From sequence record PQ464595.1: 64,000 nt of DNA; one strand, written 5' to 3'. The notes beneath the pieces were generated by a model, which saw nothing but the letters and a program-made list of their open reading frames with translations, made no database searches and was not told where the DNA came from. Within the stretch, counting starts at the first letter, position 1; each line of letters opens with the position of its first letter. A program made the position numbers and the translations under genes. Shown in pieces: positions 30,662 through 45,147 of the stretch.

Positions 30662-32176
30662 TTAACCAAGTACTTGATAACGTGGTGCGTCGATTACGCG
30701 GAGCATAACTTTCACTGGATCTACATCCTCACCGCTCAGAATTGCTTCCAACACGCTTGGAGAGAAACCACTTACCAGAGCTACGTTGTTCTGGTCGAAA
30801 CGAACAGGATTGTTACCCGGACGTGCGTTAAGGTTCCAGAAGACGATAGTTGGCAGTTCATAACCCGCTGCTGCGAAGTCTGCTTTCGCAGAGTTGAACG
30901 CCGTAGCGTTCCAACCACCCGCATTGCTTGGGTTGAATTCCATGTCAGACAGAACAATCAAGTTCTTAGGCATCTGGTCTGCTGGTACTTGCTGAGCTTT
31001 CGCTACACGCAGTACTTCACGGAATGCCGCCTGAATGTTAGTGCTACCACCCCAGAACTGACCACTGCGATAGTTCATCAGGTCACGGTACTTAGCAGCA
31101 ATGTTATTACCTTTCAGTTCAAACATTTGTGGCTGAGTACTGAAGTTCAGGAACAAGTTCTTGAACGCACCTTCTTGCTTATCGGCAATGTACAGACCCA
31201 AAGAAATCGCAACGTTCATACAAGTCATGCCTGTAGAACCAGCAGAACAGTTCATTGAAGAACTAGTATCTACCATTGGTATTGCTTTGTTGTCGCCCAT
31301 GAAGTTACGCAACTGTTCCCATTGAGCAACGCCCAAAGTTTCAGCAGCAGAACCGTTACTCAAACGAGTTGTTACATCGTATGGGTACAGAGCACCAGCG
31401 TTTACCTTCACTTCGCCTTTTTCGATTGAAGCCAGGAACTCACGGTAGCGAGCTTCGTCACGCTTCATGAACGCTGGCAGATAACGAGCACTAGCAACTG
31501 ATGGCAGCTTGCTGTATTCGATTTCTTCCCATTCGTTAGCACACATCTTCTGTTCAACAGTGTTGCTCAGAGATGACAGAAGCTTACGATACGCACGTTC
31601 GTTGATGTTCATGGTGGTCATGATCTCACGAGCGATTTTGTTGTTCGCAGCACGGTTTTTGTTCGCTTCGGTGTTCATATCAACAACGCCAGCGGCGTTC
31701 TTCTTGAACTTGTAAACACGAGGCATCCACTTAGCACACAGTGCGTTACCAGTGGTCAACGCTTCTGAGATTGCCTGGTAAGCCAGGGTCTTAGCAGCGG
31801 CAGTTTTGAAGATCAGAAGATCATCCCAACGACCGAAATCTGCCAGTACTGGAATTACACGCAGTACAGCTTCAGGATGCTTAACTTCAAGGTACTTCAG
31901 AAGTTCGCGAGGGGTATTACGTTCACCAGCACCACCACGAATATCACGTGCCCAAAGAATCATCTGGAGAGCAAGCGTAGGGTTCGCCTCGTATGCTGCG
32001 TCAAATGAGTTTTTGTACACGCCGAGATCTTTGCCACGCAAAGAACCGATCATGAAGAACAGATCTACCAGCGGGTTCAGCGTACTTTTCAGTGATGCCG
32101 CACCGTTTGCGGTGGTAGAACGATTTTGTGCTGCTGTTGTGTTAACGTTGTTAACTGCGTTTTTAAATGCTGACAT
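30662..32176 (-). CDS. DUF2828-type TROVE/Ro60-like protein with vWA domain
   Basis: NPLVDLFF, WARDIRGGAGER, FGRWDDL, CAKWMPR, MIDAS VDTSSSM, VLSDMEF, IVFWNL, VSGFSP. Confidence 0.85.
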   Translation of the reverse strand: MSAFKNAVNNVNTTAAQNRSTTANGAASLKSTLNPLVDLFFMIGSLRGKDLGVYKNSFDAAYEANPTLALQMILWARDIRGGAGERNTPRELLKYLEVKHPEAVLRVIPVLADFGRWDDLLIFKTAAAKTLAYQAISEALTTGNALCAKWMPRVYKFKKNAAGVVDMNTEANKNRAANNKIAREIMTTMNINERAYRKLLSSLSNTVEQKMCANEWEEIEYSKLPSVASARYLPAFMKRDEARYREFLASIEKGEVKVNAGALYPYDVTTRLSNGSAAETLGVAQWEQLRNFMGDNKAIPMVDTSSSMNCSAGSTGMTCMNVAISLGLYIADKQEGAFKNLFLNFSTQPQMFELKGNNIAAKYRDLMNYRSGQFWGGSTNIQAAFREVLRVAKAQQVPADQMPKNLIVLSDMEFNPSNAGGWNATAFNSAKADFAAAGYELPTIVFWNLNARPGNNPVRFDQNNVALVSGFSPSVLEAILSGEDVDPVKVMLRVIDAPRYQVLG

Positions 32177-32237
32177 TATACTTTCCTTCTCAGAAATGGT
32201 TAAATTTAATTTGTTGACTCACTTCTCTAACTTTTGG

Positions 32238-32528
32238 TTAGTCGTCATAGTCCGAATCAGGAGCACGTTCACCTGGCAACTCCAATGTATGGAACATACC
32301 AAATGCGGCTTCGACTGCTTTACCCGTTTTGCGATGATAAGCGTACACTGAATCCGTTTTATAATTTGATTCGTCATGCATCACTTCATCAACCCAAATA
32401 TGGCTTTCGGTCAAATGAACAACTTCGGTTTCATCACCTTGGGTAATAAAACCAGCACCATGAAAGAAACGATTAACTTTATCGCCGACCTTCAATGATG
32501 CCAAATACTCTTGCTTAGTCATAAGCAT
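32238..32528 (-). CDS. Hypothetical protein
   Basis: 96-aa ORF with GAGGA RBS behind a class B promoter. Confidence 0.65.
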   Translation of the reverse strand: MLMTKQEYLASLKVGDKVNRFFHGAGFITQGDETEVVHLTESHIWVDEVMHDESNYKTDSVYAYHRKTGKAVEAAFGMFHTLELPGERAPDSDYDD

Positions 32529-32544
32529 CCTCTTAATGATTTAC

Positions 32545-32574
32545 ATTATACCAGATTTTGCTGGGCTGTTTCAA
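32545..32574 (-). promoter_or_regulatory. Class B promoter: TGAAAC-N17-TATAAT
   Basis: CTGGTATAAT -10; TGAAAC 17 nt upstream (alternatively TTGAAA at 18 nt). Confidence 0.65.
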
Positions 32575-32586
32575 ATTTTTTCGATT

Positions 32587-32611
32587 AAAAAGGCAACTTT
32601 TTCAGTTGCCT
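32587..32611 (-). terminator. Intrinsic terminator
   Basis: AGGCAACT...AGTTGCCT-TTTT. Confidence 0.75.
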
Positions 32612-32616
32612 ACATT

Positions 32617-32820
32617 TTAGAAGGTTTTACATTCTGGCCTGAAAGGTATCATAGCACGGTCAGTACTGAAAGCAAATGGATTTGCTACTTTTTCATTTGC
32701 GATATTATTCACCATGTAATCTTTTACCTGATTACAAACTTCAGGCGATGGCATAGGAACTACCTGAATAGCACTATTACCACCATATGACATTACGACA
32801 TAAAACAAGAATGTTGCCAT
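32617..32820 (-). CDS. Small hypothetical protein, hydrophobic N-terminus
   Basis: 67 aa, two Cys. Confidence 0.55.
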   Translation of the reverse strand: MATFLFYVVMSYGGNSAIQVVPMPSPEVCNQVKDYMVNNIANEKVANPFAFSTDRAMIPFRPECKTF

Positions 32821-32823
32821 ATT

Positions 32824-34089
32824 TTAATCCTCCACTTTCAGAAGATATTTGTTGTTGATGACTTTGAAGTGGATAGTTTGACCATTCACTTTTACAGTAC
32901 TTTTGTACACGTCACCTTCACAAATCGGAGCTACGATACTCGCATGATCCGCTGAATCAAGTGCTTCTTTAATGGAATTGTATACATCGAAGAAGTATAC
33001 AATCTCACCCTGCGGAGCTACTGTCAGACCCAGGATGCGAGTCAGTTCGATGAAATCCGCATCATCAAGGAAGTTCTGAGCATCAATATCCCATACGCGG
33101 AATGCGTAGAACTGATGTTCTTCCAGTTGTTCGATGTTGCCCTGGATACCTGGACCCATACATTCGCCCTGAATAGCAAGCTGGCGGTTGTTATCGGTAC
33201 AGTACTTACGCAGACTTTCAATAATGTCGTCTTTCAGTGCTGCTTTCCAGAATGCCGCACTTTCATCGAACTTCAGTGCGAGGTTACGTGAACACACGAT
33301 ACCCTGACCATCTTCCCACTGGAACGGGTAAGGAATGACTTCTGCGACTTCCAGCGTCTGAGTTTCCTCATTGAACACTTTCAGATCATCATCAATCTTC
33401 TCTACGAAGAAGTCAGGATTGCTTACGAAAGCAATAGTCTGACTTGAACCTTCCAGTTTCAGAGATTTACGGAACGGTACGCCTTTCATAGTCTGACTGA
33501 ACTTACCGAATACGTTCTGAATACGATCTTCATCAGTTTTCGGAATGAAGATTGGGAAGTTCCCAGCAGTCTTCACACGACCAGCACCAGTACCGCCATT
33601 ACGTTCATCAGGACGTTCGTACTTAGTCACGTTGATGAATTGTTCCAGACCCTGACGGTTATCTTCCAGGTCAGCAAGAATTTCTACTGAATTGGACAGT
33701 ACTTCACTTGCTGACGGAGCCAGGAAGTAACGAACATTCGGGTTCAGTTCGTAGAAGATTTCATAGAACGCCGCAATCGGCAGAGCAAGACCTTGAGAAA
33801 TTTGCCCACGAAGTTTGATCGTGCGGAGGCGAATACGCTCTACACCGTTTTCATCAGTTTTAGTACCTTTTCCAGCAAGGAAAGCGAAACGACCGTCATT
33901 CGCAGGAAGGAATGAGTCAATTTCAAAGAACATGCAGTAGTCACCTACCGCAAATTCACCTTTCTTAATAACTACGTTCCAGCCGTCGATGGTTGCTACT
34001 TCGATAGCATCAGCATTCGGAATTGGATTGATCGCGTTTATTTTGCGAACAGTTACCAGACGACGACCTTCAGTTACGAGTTCAGCCAT
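32824..34089 (-). CDS. RNA ligase, Rnl2-type with N-terminal OB/tRNA-binding-like domain (DRB0094-like)
   Basis: IPNADAIEVA...GWNVV, RGQISQGL, FIPKTDEDRIQN, motif I KLEGSS, AIQGECMGPGIQGN, EGDVYK, FKVINNKYLL. Confidence 0.9.
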   Translation of the reverse strand: MAELVTEGRRLVTVRKINAINPIPNADAIEVATIDGWNVVIKKGEFAVGDYCMFFEIDSFLPANDGRFAFLAGKGTKTDENGVERIRLRTIKLRGQISQGLALPIAAFYEIFYELNPNVRYFLAPSASEVLSNSVEILADLEDNRQGLEQFINVTKYERPDERNGGTGAGRVKTAGNFPIFIPKTDEDRIQNVFGKFSQTMKGVPFRKSLKLEGSSQTIAFVSNPDFFVEKIDDDLKVFNEETQTLEVAEVIPYPFQWEDGQGIVCSRNLALKFDESAAFWKAALKDDIIESLRKYCTDNNRQLAIQGECMGPGIQGNIEQLEEHQFYAFRVWDIDAQNFLDDADFIELTRILGLTVAPQGEIVYFFDVYNSIKEALDSADHASIVAPICEGDVYKSTVKVNGQTIHFKVINNKYLLKVED

Positions 34090-40282: not shown

Positions 40283-40648
40283 TTAGCAGTGAAAAATAAA
40301 CTTCGGGTTGTAGTAGTCACAAACTTTTTTGATTTTCTCATATTCCACGGTTCCGTAAACAAAAAGAAATTCACACGGAACTTCAGACAAATACATGGTA
40401 TTAGTACTGATGAAGTGTAAATTATCTGTCTTCTGAACAGGGAAATGAGGATCAAAATTTAAACAGATAACACAATTATCTTCTAGAGCAATTTCTTTCA
40501 TTGCTTCGTAGATTCCTAATGCTTTGTCATCATTTAAACTTGGTAGGTATATTCGATTCTGTCTTGTTAGATAAGAACCGTACTCAATTAAAATTAGAAA
40601 ATATATCAACATTGTACTGTTGAAATATTCATTGTCTGCTAGTTCCAT
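40283..40648 (-). CDS. Hypothetical protein
   Basis: 121-aa ORF downstream of late core ATTAAATA. Confidence 0.55.
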   Translation of the reverse strand: MELADNEYFNSTMLIYFLILIEYGSYLTRQNRIYLPSLNDDKALGIYEAMKEIALEDNCVICLNFDPHFPVQKTDNLHFISTNTMYLSEVPCEFLFVYGTVEYEKIKKVCDYYNPKFIFHC

Positions 40649-40719
40649 TGCCTAACTCCGTTAGTCAAGAATTTTCGTTAGTACTCACGTTGTTCGTACT
40701 TAACTCAATTCCTATAAAC

Positions 40720-40727
40720 TATTTAAT
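40720..40727 (-). promoter_or_regulatory. Late promoter (ATTAAATA)
   Basis: TAAATA core downstream of the ncRNA terminator. Confidence 0.5.
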
Positions 40728-40794
40728 ACGTTTAACACTGTTTATACTGACGGGGTTTGTTGATCTATTTGCATCCCCCCGCAAAAGGGGAACG

Positions 40795-40819
40795 AAAAAA
40801 AAGTCAGAACTAAGCTGAC
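40795..40819 (-). terminator. Intrinsic terminator closing the candidate ncRNA
   Basis: GTCAG-CTTAGTT-CTGAC-TTTTTTTT. Confidence 0.8.
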
Positions 40820-41266
40820 GGTGGTAGTCTTACCATCTGAATTTGTAGATTTCACTCAAATTTTGGACGGATCTATATTGTCAAAAATAAGTAGTAAACA
40901 CTGGCGGGTTGTCCTATTTCCAGTTACTACAGTCGCATACAACGGTCGGAGTTTTCTCATTTCTCCGCATATAGTACTTGCTAATTCAGCAACAGGTACT
41001 ATTGATATTCCGTAGAATATCTCCCTTTTAACAGGTGAGTATGCCTCTAATGCCTATCTAGTGCGTTCATGTCAAGGACGCATTTAAAGTGCCGCATTGC
41101 CGTGGGTGGTACAAACTATGCCAACTCCTAACGGGTAAATTATATTGCACTCGTACTGATTGAACTACTCAACTGCTGTTTACATTTTCAACTAGGTCAG
41201 GTTCAAACTATTCCATTTCTGGATCAATCAGAGTTATAAAACTATGAAGACCTTTATAGGATCTTC
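40795..41266 (-). ncRNA. Candidate ~470-nt large structured ncRNA of unknown family
   Basis: Bounded by promoter and terminator; no RBS-supported ORF; about ten or more stems with GAAA, GCAA and cUACGg loops on the minus strand. Confidence 0.75.
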
Positions 41267-41272
41267 ATGTAC

Positions 41273-41301
41273 ATTATACCAGAACTTTTAGTTCTGTTCC
41301 A
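41273..41301 (-). promoter_or_regulatory. Class B promoter: TGGAAC-N17-TATAAT
   Basis: CTGGTATAAT; fires into the ORF-free structured region. Confidence 0.7.
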
Positions 41302-41308
41302 TTTATTT

Positions 41309-41566
41309 TCAATCTTTGTAAAAATTATCGTTGAACGATTGTGTCTTTACCAGATATGCTGGATCGATGTTTTCAGGCTTGATGTTATCGTTCAAGAACT
41401 TAATTGCCTTTTCTTCAGTACTGAATATTAAGCGTTCATCAGTTCCTTTAGCACACAAAAACCGACTACGATCATAATCGTATTCATCAAAGTCTTGCAT
41501 ACAACAAACAGTAATAATATCGTCATTGTCGCCTATACGAATCAGGCGATAGTATACATCATCCAT
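41309..41566 (-). CDS. Hypothetical protein
   Basis: 85-aa ORF, GAGGA RBS. Confidence 0.6.
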   Translation of the reverse strand: MDDVYYRLIRIGDNDDIITVCCMQDFDEYDYDRSRFLCAKGTDERLIFSTEEKAIKFLNDNIKPENIDPAYLVKTQSFNDNFYKD

Positions 41567-44666: not shown

Positions 44667-45147
44667 ATTCCTCTAAGGTAATATCAGTTTCTTCAGTTGT
44701 AAAATCGAACAAAGCCAAATAATTAGTATATTCAATTTGTTCAACCAGATAATCCAGAAGTTGGATTAACTCACGAACTTTTGGTTCATCAGCGTCAGAA
44801 TAGGTGTTTACATTTTCAAAACCTTCCCAATTCCACGGTTCACCAGATTCCTGAACTTCTTCTGGAACATTCATCATACGGAAGAATGAATAGTCTTCTT
44901 GTTCCGCAAATTCCTGAAAATGATAATCACGGAACAGACATTCGCTGCTATGAGTACAAGCATCACCATCGTTAAACCCTGGAGTATAACCATAGATCAC
45001 GAGCTTATTCATTCCTGGAATAGCTTTTAATTGAGCAGCAACGTCTTTCAGAATCTGACGTTTATTAGTACTCAAAAAGTTTGACAAGTCGCATTTCGCG
45101 GCGTCAGATTTAGTTTTCAGTTCTTGAAATTGTTCAAACAGTGTCAT
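44650..45147 (-). CDS. NDGxxCxH-family paralog 2
   Basis: GYTPGFNDGDACTH...EYDCGH; start moved to ATG 45147. Confidence 0.75.
   Translation of the reverse strand: MTLFEQFQELKTKSDAAKCDLSNFLSTNKRQILKDVAAQLKAIPGMNKLVIYGYTPGFNDGDACTHSSECLFRDYHFQEFAEQEDYSFFRMMNVPEEVQESGEPWNWEGFENVNTYSDADEPKVRELIQLLDYLVEQIEYTNYLALFDFTTEETDITLEEYDCGH

Follow-up and report, generated by a model that had tools for sequence, protein, structure and literature searches.

Candidate new class of large structured non-coding RNA encoded by paralogous genes of Rak2-like jumbo phages

ROOL and GOLLD are large ornate RNAs associated with phages or prophages, and both form RNA-only cages. Large RNAs with intricate folds but no known function are seldom found, and several of them have led to new biochemistry. 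An elaborate tertiary fold is usual in RNAs whose working form is a folded particle (ribozymes, ROOL, GOLLD, OLE, raiA). Here, we describe an element of Erwinia phage Kaldavass (PQ464595.1), a Rak2-like jumbo myovirus with a genome of 366.6 kb. The element was analyzed within a stretch of 64,000 nt of this record, referred to as the window (record coordinate = window coordinate + 248000), in which the interval 40650-41310 corresponds to record positions 288650-289310 (100% identical). It is almost certainly one of five paralogous genes for a protein-free structured RNA of ∼520 nt (41267-40747, minus strand), located at fixed positions throughout the Rak2-like jumbo phages.

Like ROOL and GOLLD, the predicted RNA of the element is phage-encoded, at least 0.5 kb long, and devoid of an open reading frame (ORF) and of a known function, and it combines many conserved helices with long-range tertiary pairing. 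Unlike them, it resides in enterobacterial virulent jumbo phages, gives no match to the ROOL and GOLLD covariance models, and is present as four to five diverged paralogues per genome, at roughly even fixed positions, with their own promoters and a tail extending past the terminator. Another point of comparison is provided by ncRNA001-004 of the distantly related jumbo phage PA5oct, four transcripts of 236-619 nt defined by RNA-seq, two of which are highly expressed (PMC7318152). Like the predicted Kaldavass RNA, these are long non-coding transcripts of unknown role from the same broad phage clade. When two of them, ncRNA002 and ncRNA004, were compared with the family described here using nhmmer, no homology was detectable (best E = 0.15).

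The initial annotation of the window had singled out this locus as its longest stretch without a credible gene. Indeed, the interval 40649-41308 (660 nt) is the largest in the window outside ORFs of at least 70 amino acids (aa), the runner-up being 244 nt long, and the longest sense ORF within the element has the 34 codons originally reported. Each sense frame contains 5-20 stop codons of mixed type (9-20 by the count for this interval). The longest small ORFs are located differently in different paralogues, no ORF is conserved, and single-base indels between orthologues occur inside the most conserved blocks of the element.

A BLAST comparison of the interval with the rest of the Kaldavass genome added four copies to the one in the window, each of them on the minus strand and in a gap holding tiny annotated ORFs. 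The core motif ACCCGTTAG...CACGGCAAT occurs at exactly five sites of this genome (record positions 44810, 122767, 207611, 289136, and 355164). A pattern scan of IMG/VR yielded 55 loci, of which 44 full-length copies were retained after chance matches and incomplete loci had been dropped. These fall into five orthologous groups (K1-K5, the copy in the window belonging to K1), together with copies of the 121Q clade. The two motifs used for retrieval are invariant among the collected sequences by construction; a fourth 121Q copy and that of RaK2, found by other routes, show AACCUGUUAG / CACGGCGAC and ACCCGUUUAG. Copy number is five in Kaldavass, four in 121Q, and two or more in RaK2.

Full-length counterparts of the interval, with 82-95% identity, occur in phages XbC2, GAP32, CBB, BF, the pEa_SNUABM phages, and fHe-Yen9-03/04, and the family is recognizable in 62-71 phage records, among them 121Q/PBECO4 and RaK2/K64-1 (the latter for the 3′ half). 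The copies occupy syntenic positions as far out as RaK2, in at least five phage genera. Among K1 orthologues, pairwise identity is 84% in the 5′ domain, 86% in the central region, and 94% in the 3′ domain, the most conserved part of the element, compared to 64-68% in the flanking coding sequences. The genes flanking the five copies are mutually unrelated (best E above 0.3 for both upstream and downstream proteins). Each of K1, K2, K4, and K5 is followed by 65-85 kb of genes that run in its own direction. K3 alone has no same-strand gene after it, and a strong bidirectional terminator there faces the baseplate-hub gene cluster, which makes this copy a useful natural control for cis-regulatory models.

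Comparison of the copies defined the following features in the 5′ domain and central region:

41244..41268, minus strand: optional 5′ hairpin at the predicted transcript start, terminator-like in the terminator scan
41231-41224 with 41163-41156, minus strand: helix P1, CTGATTGA/TCAATCAG (P1 region 41156..41231)
41223-41212, minus strand: hairpin P1a, TCCA-GAAA-TGGA, inside P1
41200-41173, minus strand: hairpin P1b, inside P1, with conserved loop GAAAAUGUA
41151-41147 with 41092-41088, minus strand: helix P2 (P2 region 41088..41151)
41136-41128, 41124-41107 and 41104-41093, minus strand: inside P2, respectively ACCCGUUAG, a swappable hairpin and CACGGCAAUGCG
41082-41062, minus strand: hairpin H3 (central region 41004..41082)
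41061-41021, minus strand: central junction CUAGAUAG...AAGGGAG, the junction motifs being conserved in all paralogues
41021-41004, minus strand: hairpin at the 3′ end of the central region

Pairing in the 5′ domain was evaluated for 25 pairs of P1, P1a, P1b, and P2 in a MAFFT alignment of 42 sequences. Of all alignment cells, 93.3% were paired, compared to 73.3% in 500 shuffles, and 205 cells were changed on both sides, compared to 75 in the shuffles; none of the 500 shuffles reached either observed value. The covariation score was 0.512 (0.168 in the shuffles). When the 3′ partner was slid by 1-3 columns, pairing fell to 26-46%, double changes to 29-73, and the covariation score to 0.045-0.129. 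Because the sequences are related, such cell counts overstate the number of independent events, and distinct compensatory variants are the more robust measure. P1 was 98.5% paired, with four of its eight pairs changed on both sides, and takes the form CUGAUUGA/UCAAUCAG in K1, CUGAAUGA/UCAUUCAG in K2, CUGCUUGG/UCAAGCAG in K3, CUGUUUGA/UCAGGCAG in K4, and UGUUGG/CCAACA in RaK2. All four pairs of P1a were changed on both sides, P1b was 86-90% paired, and P2 was 100% paired, with three of its five pairs changed on both sides (GC/CG/UA and AU/UA exchanges).

The long-range CTGATTGA/TCAATCAG pairing (P1) and the TCCA-GAAA-TGGA hairpin (P1a), both proposed from the Kaldavass sequence in the initial annotation, are thus borne out by covariation, as is TGCGT..ACGCA (H3), for which the compensatory variants UGCGU/ACGCA, UACGC/GCGUA, and GGCGU/ACGCC were found. 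The proposed 5′ hairpin ATGAAGA..TCTTCAT shows compensatory changes among K1 orthologues, but is absent in paralogues K3-K5. The proposed CCACG-GCAA-TGCGG hairpin is not supported: this sequence is an invariant motif, and its rare changes break the proposed pairs.

The hairpin at 41107-41124, between ACCCGUUAG and CACGGCAAU, exists in two unrelated versions, a short one of 23 nt (GGCAUAGUUUGUACC) and a long one of ∼40 nt (GUACUAGCAGUC...GACUAC). Both were found inside one orthologue group, and the versions are spread across the groups. In addition, some copies of the K2 group bear the K4-type sequence of helix Pc3 (described below). Modules have therefore apparently been exchanged between paralogues by recombination.

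The 3′ domain contains a second set of helices and a pseudoknot:

40971..41002, minus strand: hairpin hp2; its loop, CUGAAUU (40989-40983), provides the 5′ strand of pseudoknot PK1
40967-40947, minus strand: hairpin Pc1, with many variants (3′ domain 40837..40967)
40947-40940, minus strand: GACCGUUG, 3′ domain
40931-40927 with 40848-40844, minus strand: Pc3, a 5-bp long-range helix, UGUAG/CUACA in K1
40924-40900, minus strand: hairpin Pc2, with a 5-bp stem and an invariant 15-nt loop, AAACAGGACAACCCG
40887-40859, minus strand: inserted module hairpin, 3′ domain
40843-40837, minus strand: 3′ strand of PK1, AAUUCAG, 7 nt directly after the 3′ strand of Pc3

In PK1, the loop of hp2 is matched by a perfect 7-nt complement directly after Pc3 in all 43 copies compared, through 10 distinct target 7-mers, while control offsets give a complement for 8.4% of the 7-mers. 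The strands are CUGAAUU/AAUUCAG in K1, UUCAUGU/ACAUGAA in K2, AUUGCAU/AUGCGAU in K3, AUUGUAU/AUACAAU in K4 and 121Q, GUCGAAU/AUUCGAU in K5, and CUUGAAU/AUUCAAG in RaK2, and the length of PK1 is 7-9 bp. Pc2 forms all five of its pairs in 42 of 43 copies, with nine sequence variants. Pc3 has seven compensatory variants, and its 3′ strand always lies in the context aaU-NNNNN-a. In the RaK2 copy, all helices are retained with different sequences.

Covariation also confirmed the predicted stems ATAGTAC..GTACTAT (hp2), CGGAG..CTCCG (Pc1), and TTTTGAC..GTCCAAAA (the module hairpin). Among the other stems predicted here, GTAGTAA..TTACTAC (40891-40930) is rivalled by the family-wide Pc3 pairing UGUAG/CUACA, TGGTA-AGAC-TACCA is specific to K1, and GCATAC/GTATGC is invariant and hence gives no covariation signal either way. 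The module hairpin (40859-40887, loop ACAAUAUAGAUCC) is located downstream of Pc2 in K1 and upstream of Pc1 in K2-K4; a structural module has moved within the RNA. In several K1 orthologues this hairpin is flanked by duplicated CUACAAAUU, the upstream copy in Kaldavass being CUACUUAUU.

In total, at least seven helices are supported by covariation, in addition to PK1. The 5′-domain helices contain 59 G.U cells, which become A.C mismatches if read on the other strand, and these cells, together with the promoter and the terminator, fix the strand of the RNA. With little room for doubt, the predicted fold consists of a 5′ domain (P1, P1a, P1b, P2) and a multi-helix 3′ junction (Pc1, Pc2, Pc3) locked by PK1, with ∼10 invariant unpaired motifs displayed. 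Selection on this pseudoknotted RNA fold is strong, and the fold is accompanied by its own promoter and maintained as four to five diverged copies at syntenic positions.

None of the known RNA families accounts for the element. A covariance-model scan of the whole window against Rfam 15 at gathering thresholds gave no matches (to GOLLD, ROOL, HEARO, OLE, raiA, or any other family). At relaxed thresholds, the region 40600-41450 gave only chance matches to snoRNAs and miRNAs (E up to 10), and 13 paralogue loci gave nothing consistent (E up to 5). ARAGORN detected no tRNA or tmRNA genes in the window, and no description of the element was found in the literature searched. Its core of ∼520 nt (above 400 nt), lack of a conserved ORF, at least seven covarying helices, and PK1 place the element among large ornate non-coding RNAs, a descriptive category rather than a family defined by homology. 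The initial proposal of a large structured phage RNA on the promoter-driven strand, probably of a new class, is upheld by the absence of an Rfam family, the covariation, the G.U cells, and the compensatory pseudoknot in 43 of 43 copies. On these comparative grounds, we call the element a putative member of a previously undescribed class of large structured RNA.

Expression signals border the element on both sides:

41273..41301, minus strand: promoter, with a −35-like TGGAACA (∼41301-41295) and an extended −10, TGGTATAAT (41281-41273)
40819-40795, minus strand: intrinsic terminator, GTCAG-CTTAGTT-CTGAC followed by T8, from the terminator scan

Both signals had been reported previously; TGGTATAAT and TGGAACA of the class B promoter were found in place, and the terminator was recovered by the scan. 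The sequence TGnTATAAT occurs at the same relative place in 43 of the 44 copies, 100-146 nt upstream of the core motif, and −35 and −10 signals are annotated at the same position in the fHe-Yen9-03 orthologue. Its TGAAACG-like −35 places the promoter in the TGAAACG / TATAAT class of this phage, a class described in phage CBB as divergent RpoD-like and located upstream of DNA-synthesis genes (PMC5259590). We infer from these motifs that the promoter is used. Its spacer (41280-41296) contains a 6-bp inverted repeat, CAGAAC-N5-GTTCTG, which is CACAAT-N5-ATTGTG in the GAP32 orthologue, a compensatory form, and is only partly kept in other orthologues; it may be an operator or a product of chance.

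The initial annotation placed the end of the element at the terminator (40795). The conserved core in fact runs ∼50 nt farther, to 40747, and is followed by two less conserved segments:

40835-40822, minus strand: K1-specific hairpin (region 40795..40835)
40820-40815, minus strand: first CGUCAG repeat
40793-40772, minus strand: C4/G6 hairpin, start of the conserved tail (40747..40793)
40771-40747, minus strand: CAAAUAGAUCAACAAACCCCGUCAG with the second CGUCAG repeat (40752-40747), conserved tail
40712..40746, minus strand: AT-rich block of low sequence conservation, directly after the tail
40649..40711, minus strand: accessory 3′ module GAAUUGAG...AAUUC, then a UUGAC hairpin, up to the start codon of the following ORF (40648)

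The tail is present in all five paralogues, 121Q, and RaK2. In all paralogues the first CGUCAG is followed by a terminator-like hairpin with a T run (27 of 44 copies), the C-run/G6 hairpin, AUGMAAAUG...CAACAAAYCYCGUCAG, and 45 nt of AT-rich sequence. The terminator and G-run segment is flanked by YCGUCAR direct repeats, which change in concert between lineages (CGUCAG twice in the Kaldavass clade, CGUCAA twice in the 121Q clade, CUUCAAG twice in RaK2). Such concerted change could reflect recognition by a common sequence-specific reader, or processing at these sites. The accessory module of ∼60 nt is common to K1, K3, K5, and some copies of the 121Q clade; it is ∼70% conserved, like the flanks, and may lie outside the RNA proper.

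As to the role of the element, we tentatively favor a folded RNA that would act in trans, with several copies for dosage, similar in kind to ROOL and GOLLD. This preference follows from the complexity of the fold, the promoters and terminators carried by individual copies, and the module exchange between paralogues, which is expected if the copies are equivalent. The RNA would be transcribed by the host polymerase from the TGAAACG/TATAAT-class promoter and produced from four to five gene copies, like rRNA and tRNA genes. The folded RNA itself would be the product, an architectural RNA, whose invariant loops might bind a putative conserved phage or host partner, or other copies, as in the oligomeric ROOL and GOLLD particles.

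Several observations weigh against this proposal. The five Kaldavass copies, all on one strand, are spaced by 78, 85, 82, 66, and 56 kb. The probability that the smallest gap on a circle reaches this size, (1 − n*g/L)^(n−1), is ∼0.003, a post hoc value, the pattern having been seen first; in 121Q the gaps are 102, 55, 79, and 112 kb (P ∼0.05). Identity between K1 orthologues is 89% over the 50 nt past the terminator. In the 45 nt that directly follow the tail, GC content averages 23.9% (44 copies), compared to 38.4% for the genome, in which only 0.5% of 45-nt windows have a GC content of 22% or less. A trans-acting product does not explain the even copy spacing, the conserved tail, or the AT-rich block. 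Moreover, a T run of six or more is present at the terminator site in 27 of the 44 copies and in none of the other 17, which would be co-transcribed with downstream genes. Finally, the minimum free energy of the promoter strand is unexceptional (z-score −1.5; 8 of 100 shuffles fold as well) and that of the opposite strand is lower (z-score −3.6). Since the antisense strand folds better and the sense value is not significant, folding energy was not used as evidence; it is the comparative evidence that does show the predicted structure to exceed chance.

The spacing, the conserved tail, and the AT-rich block are the starting point for an alternative that we consider possible, if rather unlikely: that the element is a cis-acting replication origin, in which the promoter would drive a structured pre-primer transcript, and the G6 run and AT-rich block would form an R-loop priming the leading strand, in the manner of ColE1 RNA II or T4 oriF/oriG. 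Four to five such origins would then be distributed along the 350-kb genome, an arrangement to which we give the same limited credence. Five same-strand copies at 44.8, 122.8, 207.6, 289.1, and 355.2 kb of 366.6 kb would fit this scheme, as would their spacing (smallest-gap P ∼0.003 in Kaldavass and ∼0.05 in 121Q) and the synteny of their positions out to RaK2, although the spacing was noticed post hoc and syntenic lineages are not independent. The transcript length of ∼0.5 kb, the position of the promoter 470-520 nt upstream of the invariant G6 run, and the persistence of a conserved G6-bearing tail on the RNA strand past the terminator would also suit a pre-primer, but in 27 of 44 copies an intrinsic terminator lies upstream of the proposed R-loop zone. 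The 45-nt block of 24% GC follows all 44 copies, the promoter is of the class reported before DNA-synthesis genes in CBB, and most copies head long same-direction gene arrays. On the other hand, AT-rich spacers are common between genes, and the pseudoknotted fold with its many invariant loops far exceeds the known needs of an R-loop. There is no change of GC skew at the elements, although this skew tracks gene orientation and is uninformative on origins. To our knowledge, no T4-type phage has homologous repeated origins.

The models for such an origin agree with the element in part. ColE1 RNA II, like the predicted RNA, is a transcript of ∼0.5 kb with its own promoter, whose folding matters and which has G-rich RNA near the 3′ end followed by AT-rich DNA. 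It has no homology to the element, in which a terminator precedes the G-run in most copies and the fold greatly exceeds that of RNA II in conservation and knotting; priming by the element is putative. T4 oriF and oriG, which combine a middle promoter with a DNA-unwinding element, share with it a T4-like replication setting and several sites per genome, and may be compared to its non-canonical promoter class, reported before DNA-synthesis genes, and to the AT-rich block downstream (44 of 44 copies). Unlike the copies of the element, the T4 origins are mutually non-homologous and need no structured RNA, while 470 nt of conserved fold separate the promoter of the element from the AT-rich block. 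If true, this would be the first ColE1-like structured-RNA-primed origin system in a lytic phage.

Transcription control in cis appears unlikely. Here, the nascent RNA would modify the polymerase or switch the terminator, by processive antitermination similar to that of HK022 put or EAR or as a very large attenuator, and so permit read-through into the following gene array. The order of promoter, structured RNA, intrinsic terminator, and conserved tail would fit such control. Two alternative partners are available to the G6 run, the upstream C-run and the downstream YCYC, and changes on the pyrimidine side are all C/U, with pairing to G kept. Long co-directional gene arrays (65-85 kb) start at K1, K2, K4, and K5, whereas K3 precedes opposite-strand baseplate genes and a strong terminator, and 17 of 44 copies have no terminator to regulate. 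HK022 put and EAR are, like the element, structured RNAs between promoter and terminator that head long operons, but at 70-120 nt these known RNAs are 4-7 times smaller; the element has no Rfam match, and its K3 copy heads no operon. The downstream genes being unrelated, a gene-specific riboswitch is not a suitable form of this model.

It is very improbable that the element acts as a DNA-level repeat (a recombination hotspot, protein-binding array, or single-stranded DNA signal), with RNA structure being incidental or formed in DNA. The concerted YCGUCAR repeats (CGTCAG, CGTCAA, CTTCAAG) would suit a shared sequence-specific binding factor, and modules are swapped between copies, but a promoter lies directly upstream of 43 of 44 copies, 59 G.U cells occur in the helices of one strand, and neither a loop-to-strand pseudoknot nor hairpins of the tetraloop type have a function in duplex DNA.

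The element differs from earlier large folded RNAs of this kind in four respects. Its carriers are virulent phages in culture, and E. coli K-12 is a host for some of them (Sharanji), while the host of Kaldavass is Erwinia aphidicola. Each genome provides four to five diverged natural variants, equivalent to ready-made compensatory mutants. Conservation of the element exceeds that of the surrounding proteins, and its positional pattern is unexplained. Either outcome would be new: a giant-phage RNA particle or ribonucleoprotein, or RNA-defined landmarks of replication or transcription.

Other candidate identities were tried and rejected. BLAST of E. coli genomes on both strands revealed no similarity, so that, within the sensitivity of BLAST, the element neither imitates a host sequence nor is antisense to one. 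The idea that AAGGAUCGCACCUUACC imitates the 16S 3′ end was dropped, as conservation is confined to the AGG/CCU stem, with a variable loop. When 185,579 bacterial genomes were searched for the core pattern, the 93 matches found were all due to chance and without BLAST similarity to the family; a looser 15-base pattern scan gave chance matches among the matches listed and was discarded. A leader of a paralogous gene family was rejected because the flanking genes are unrelated, and a riboswitch or gene-specific leader because there is no shared downstream gene (best E above 0.3) and K3 has no same-strand downstream gene.

The window also contains a protein for which a link to the RNA had been suggested; the other roles put forward in the initial annotation were a putative scaffold or decoy, or a possible partner of the RNA-repair enzymes. 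Encoded at 30662-32176 on the minus strand and annotated as an RNA-binding protein (504 aa), it carries DUF2828 and DUF7788 with a weak VWA match. This Ro60-like architecture is found 650 nt from an RNA ligase (PHA02142 OB-fold and RNA_ligase domains), within 30662-34089. Only one of the five RNA copies lies within 10 kb of this protein, the copies being scattered over the genome, and location gives no support to a link between the element and the TROVE-like protein. No Y-RNA-like Rfam match was found near its gene. A Y RNA (∼100 nt, beside the Ro gene) was also rejected as an identity for the element itself, which has no Rfam match, is five times larger, and has four of its five copies far from the DUF2828/DUF7788 gene.

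The weakest alternative, one or more hidden protein-coding genes (small ORFs or a frame read through by a suppressor tRNA), would draw on the small ORFs annotated at the locus in the Kaldavass and fHe-Yen9 records and on the suppressor tRNA annotated at record 92884-92956, but is discarded as extremely improbable, given the 5-20 mixed stops in every sense frame, the lack of a conserved ORF, the different placement of the longest ORFs in each paralogue, the single-base indels between orthologues in the most conserved blocks, and substitutions that follow base-pairing, not codons. The suppressor tRNA gene, located outside the window among 34 annotated tRNA genes, cannot rescue the element as coding; it may matter for other genes with in-frame stops.

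The existing annotation of the locus is inconsistent. The Kaldavass GenBank record has three tiny ORFs over it, on the strand opposite the RNA. The fHe-Yen9-03 record has two small ORFs, different from those of Kaldavass, and none is common to the paralogues. The opposite-strand ORFs of the Kaldavass record lie at:

40690-41015 (record 288690-289015), opposite strand: small ORFs
41267-41431 (record 289267-289431), opposite strand: small ORFs

Locus annotation is wrong in dozens of phage records, with differing spurious small ORFs placed over the RNA, and needs correction. Next to the element, an 85-aa ORF at 41309-41566 is absent from the GenBank annotation, and the record has a 32-aa ORF instead.

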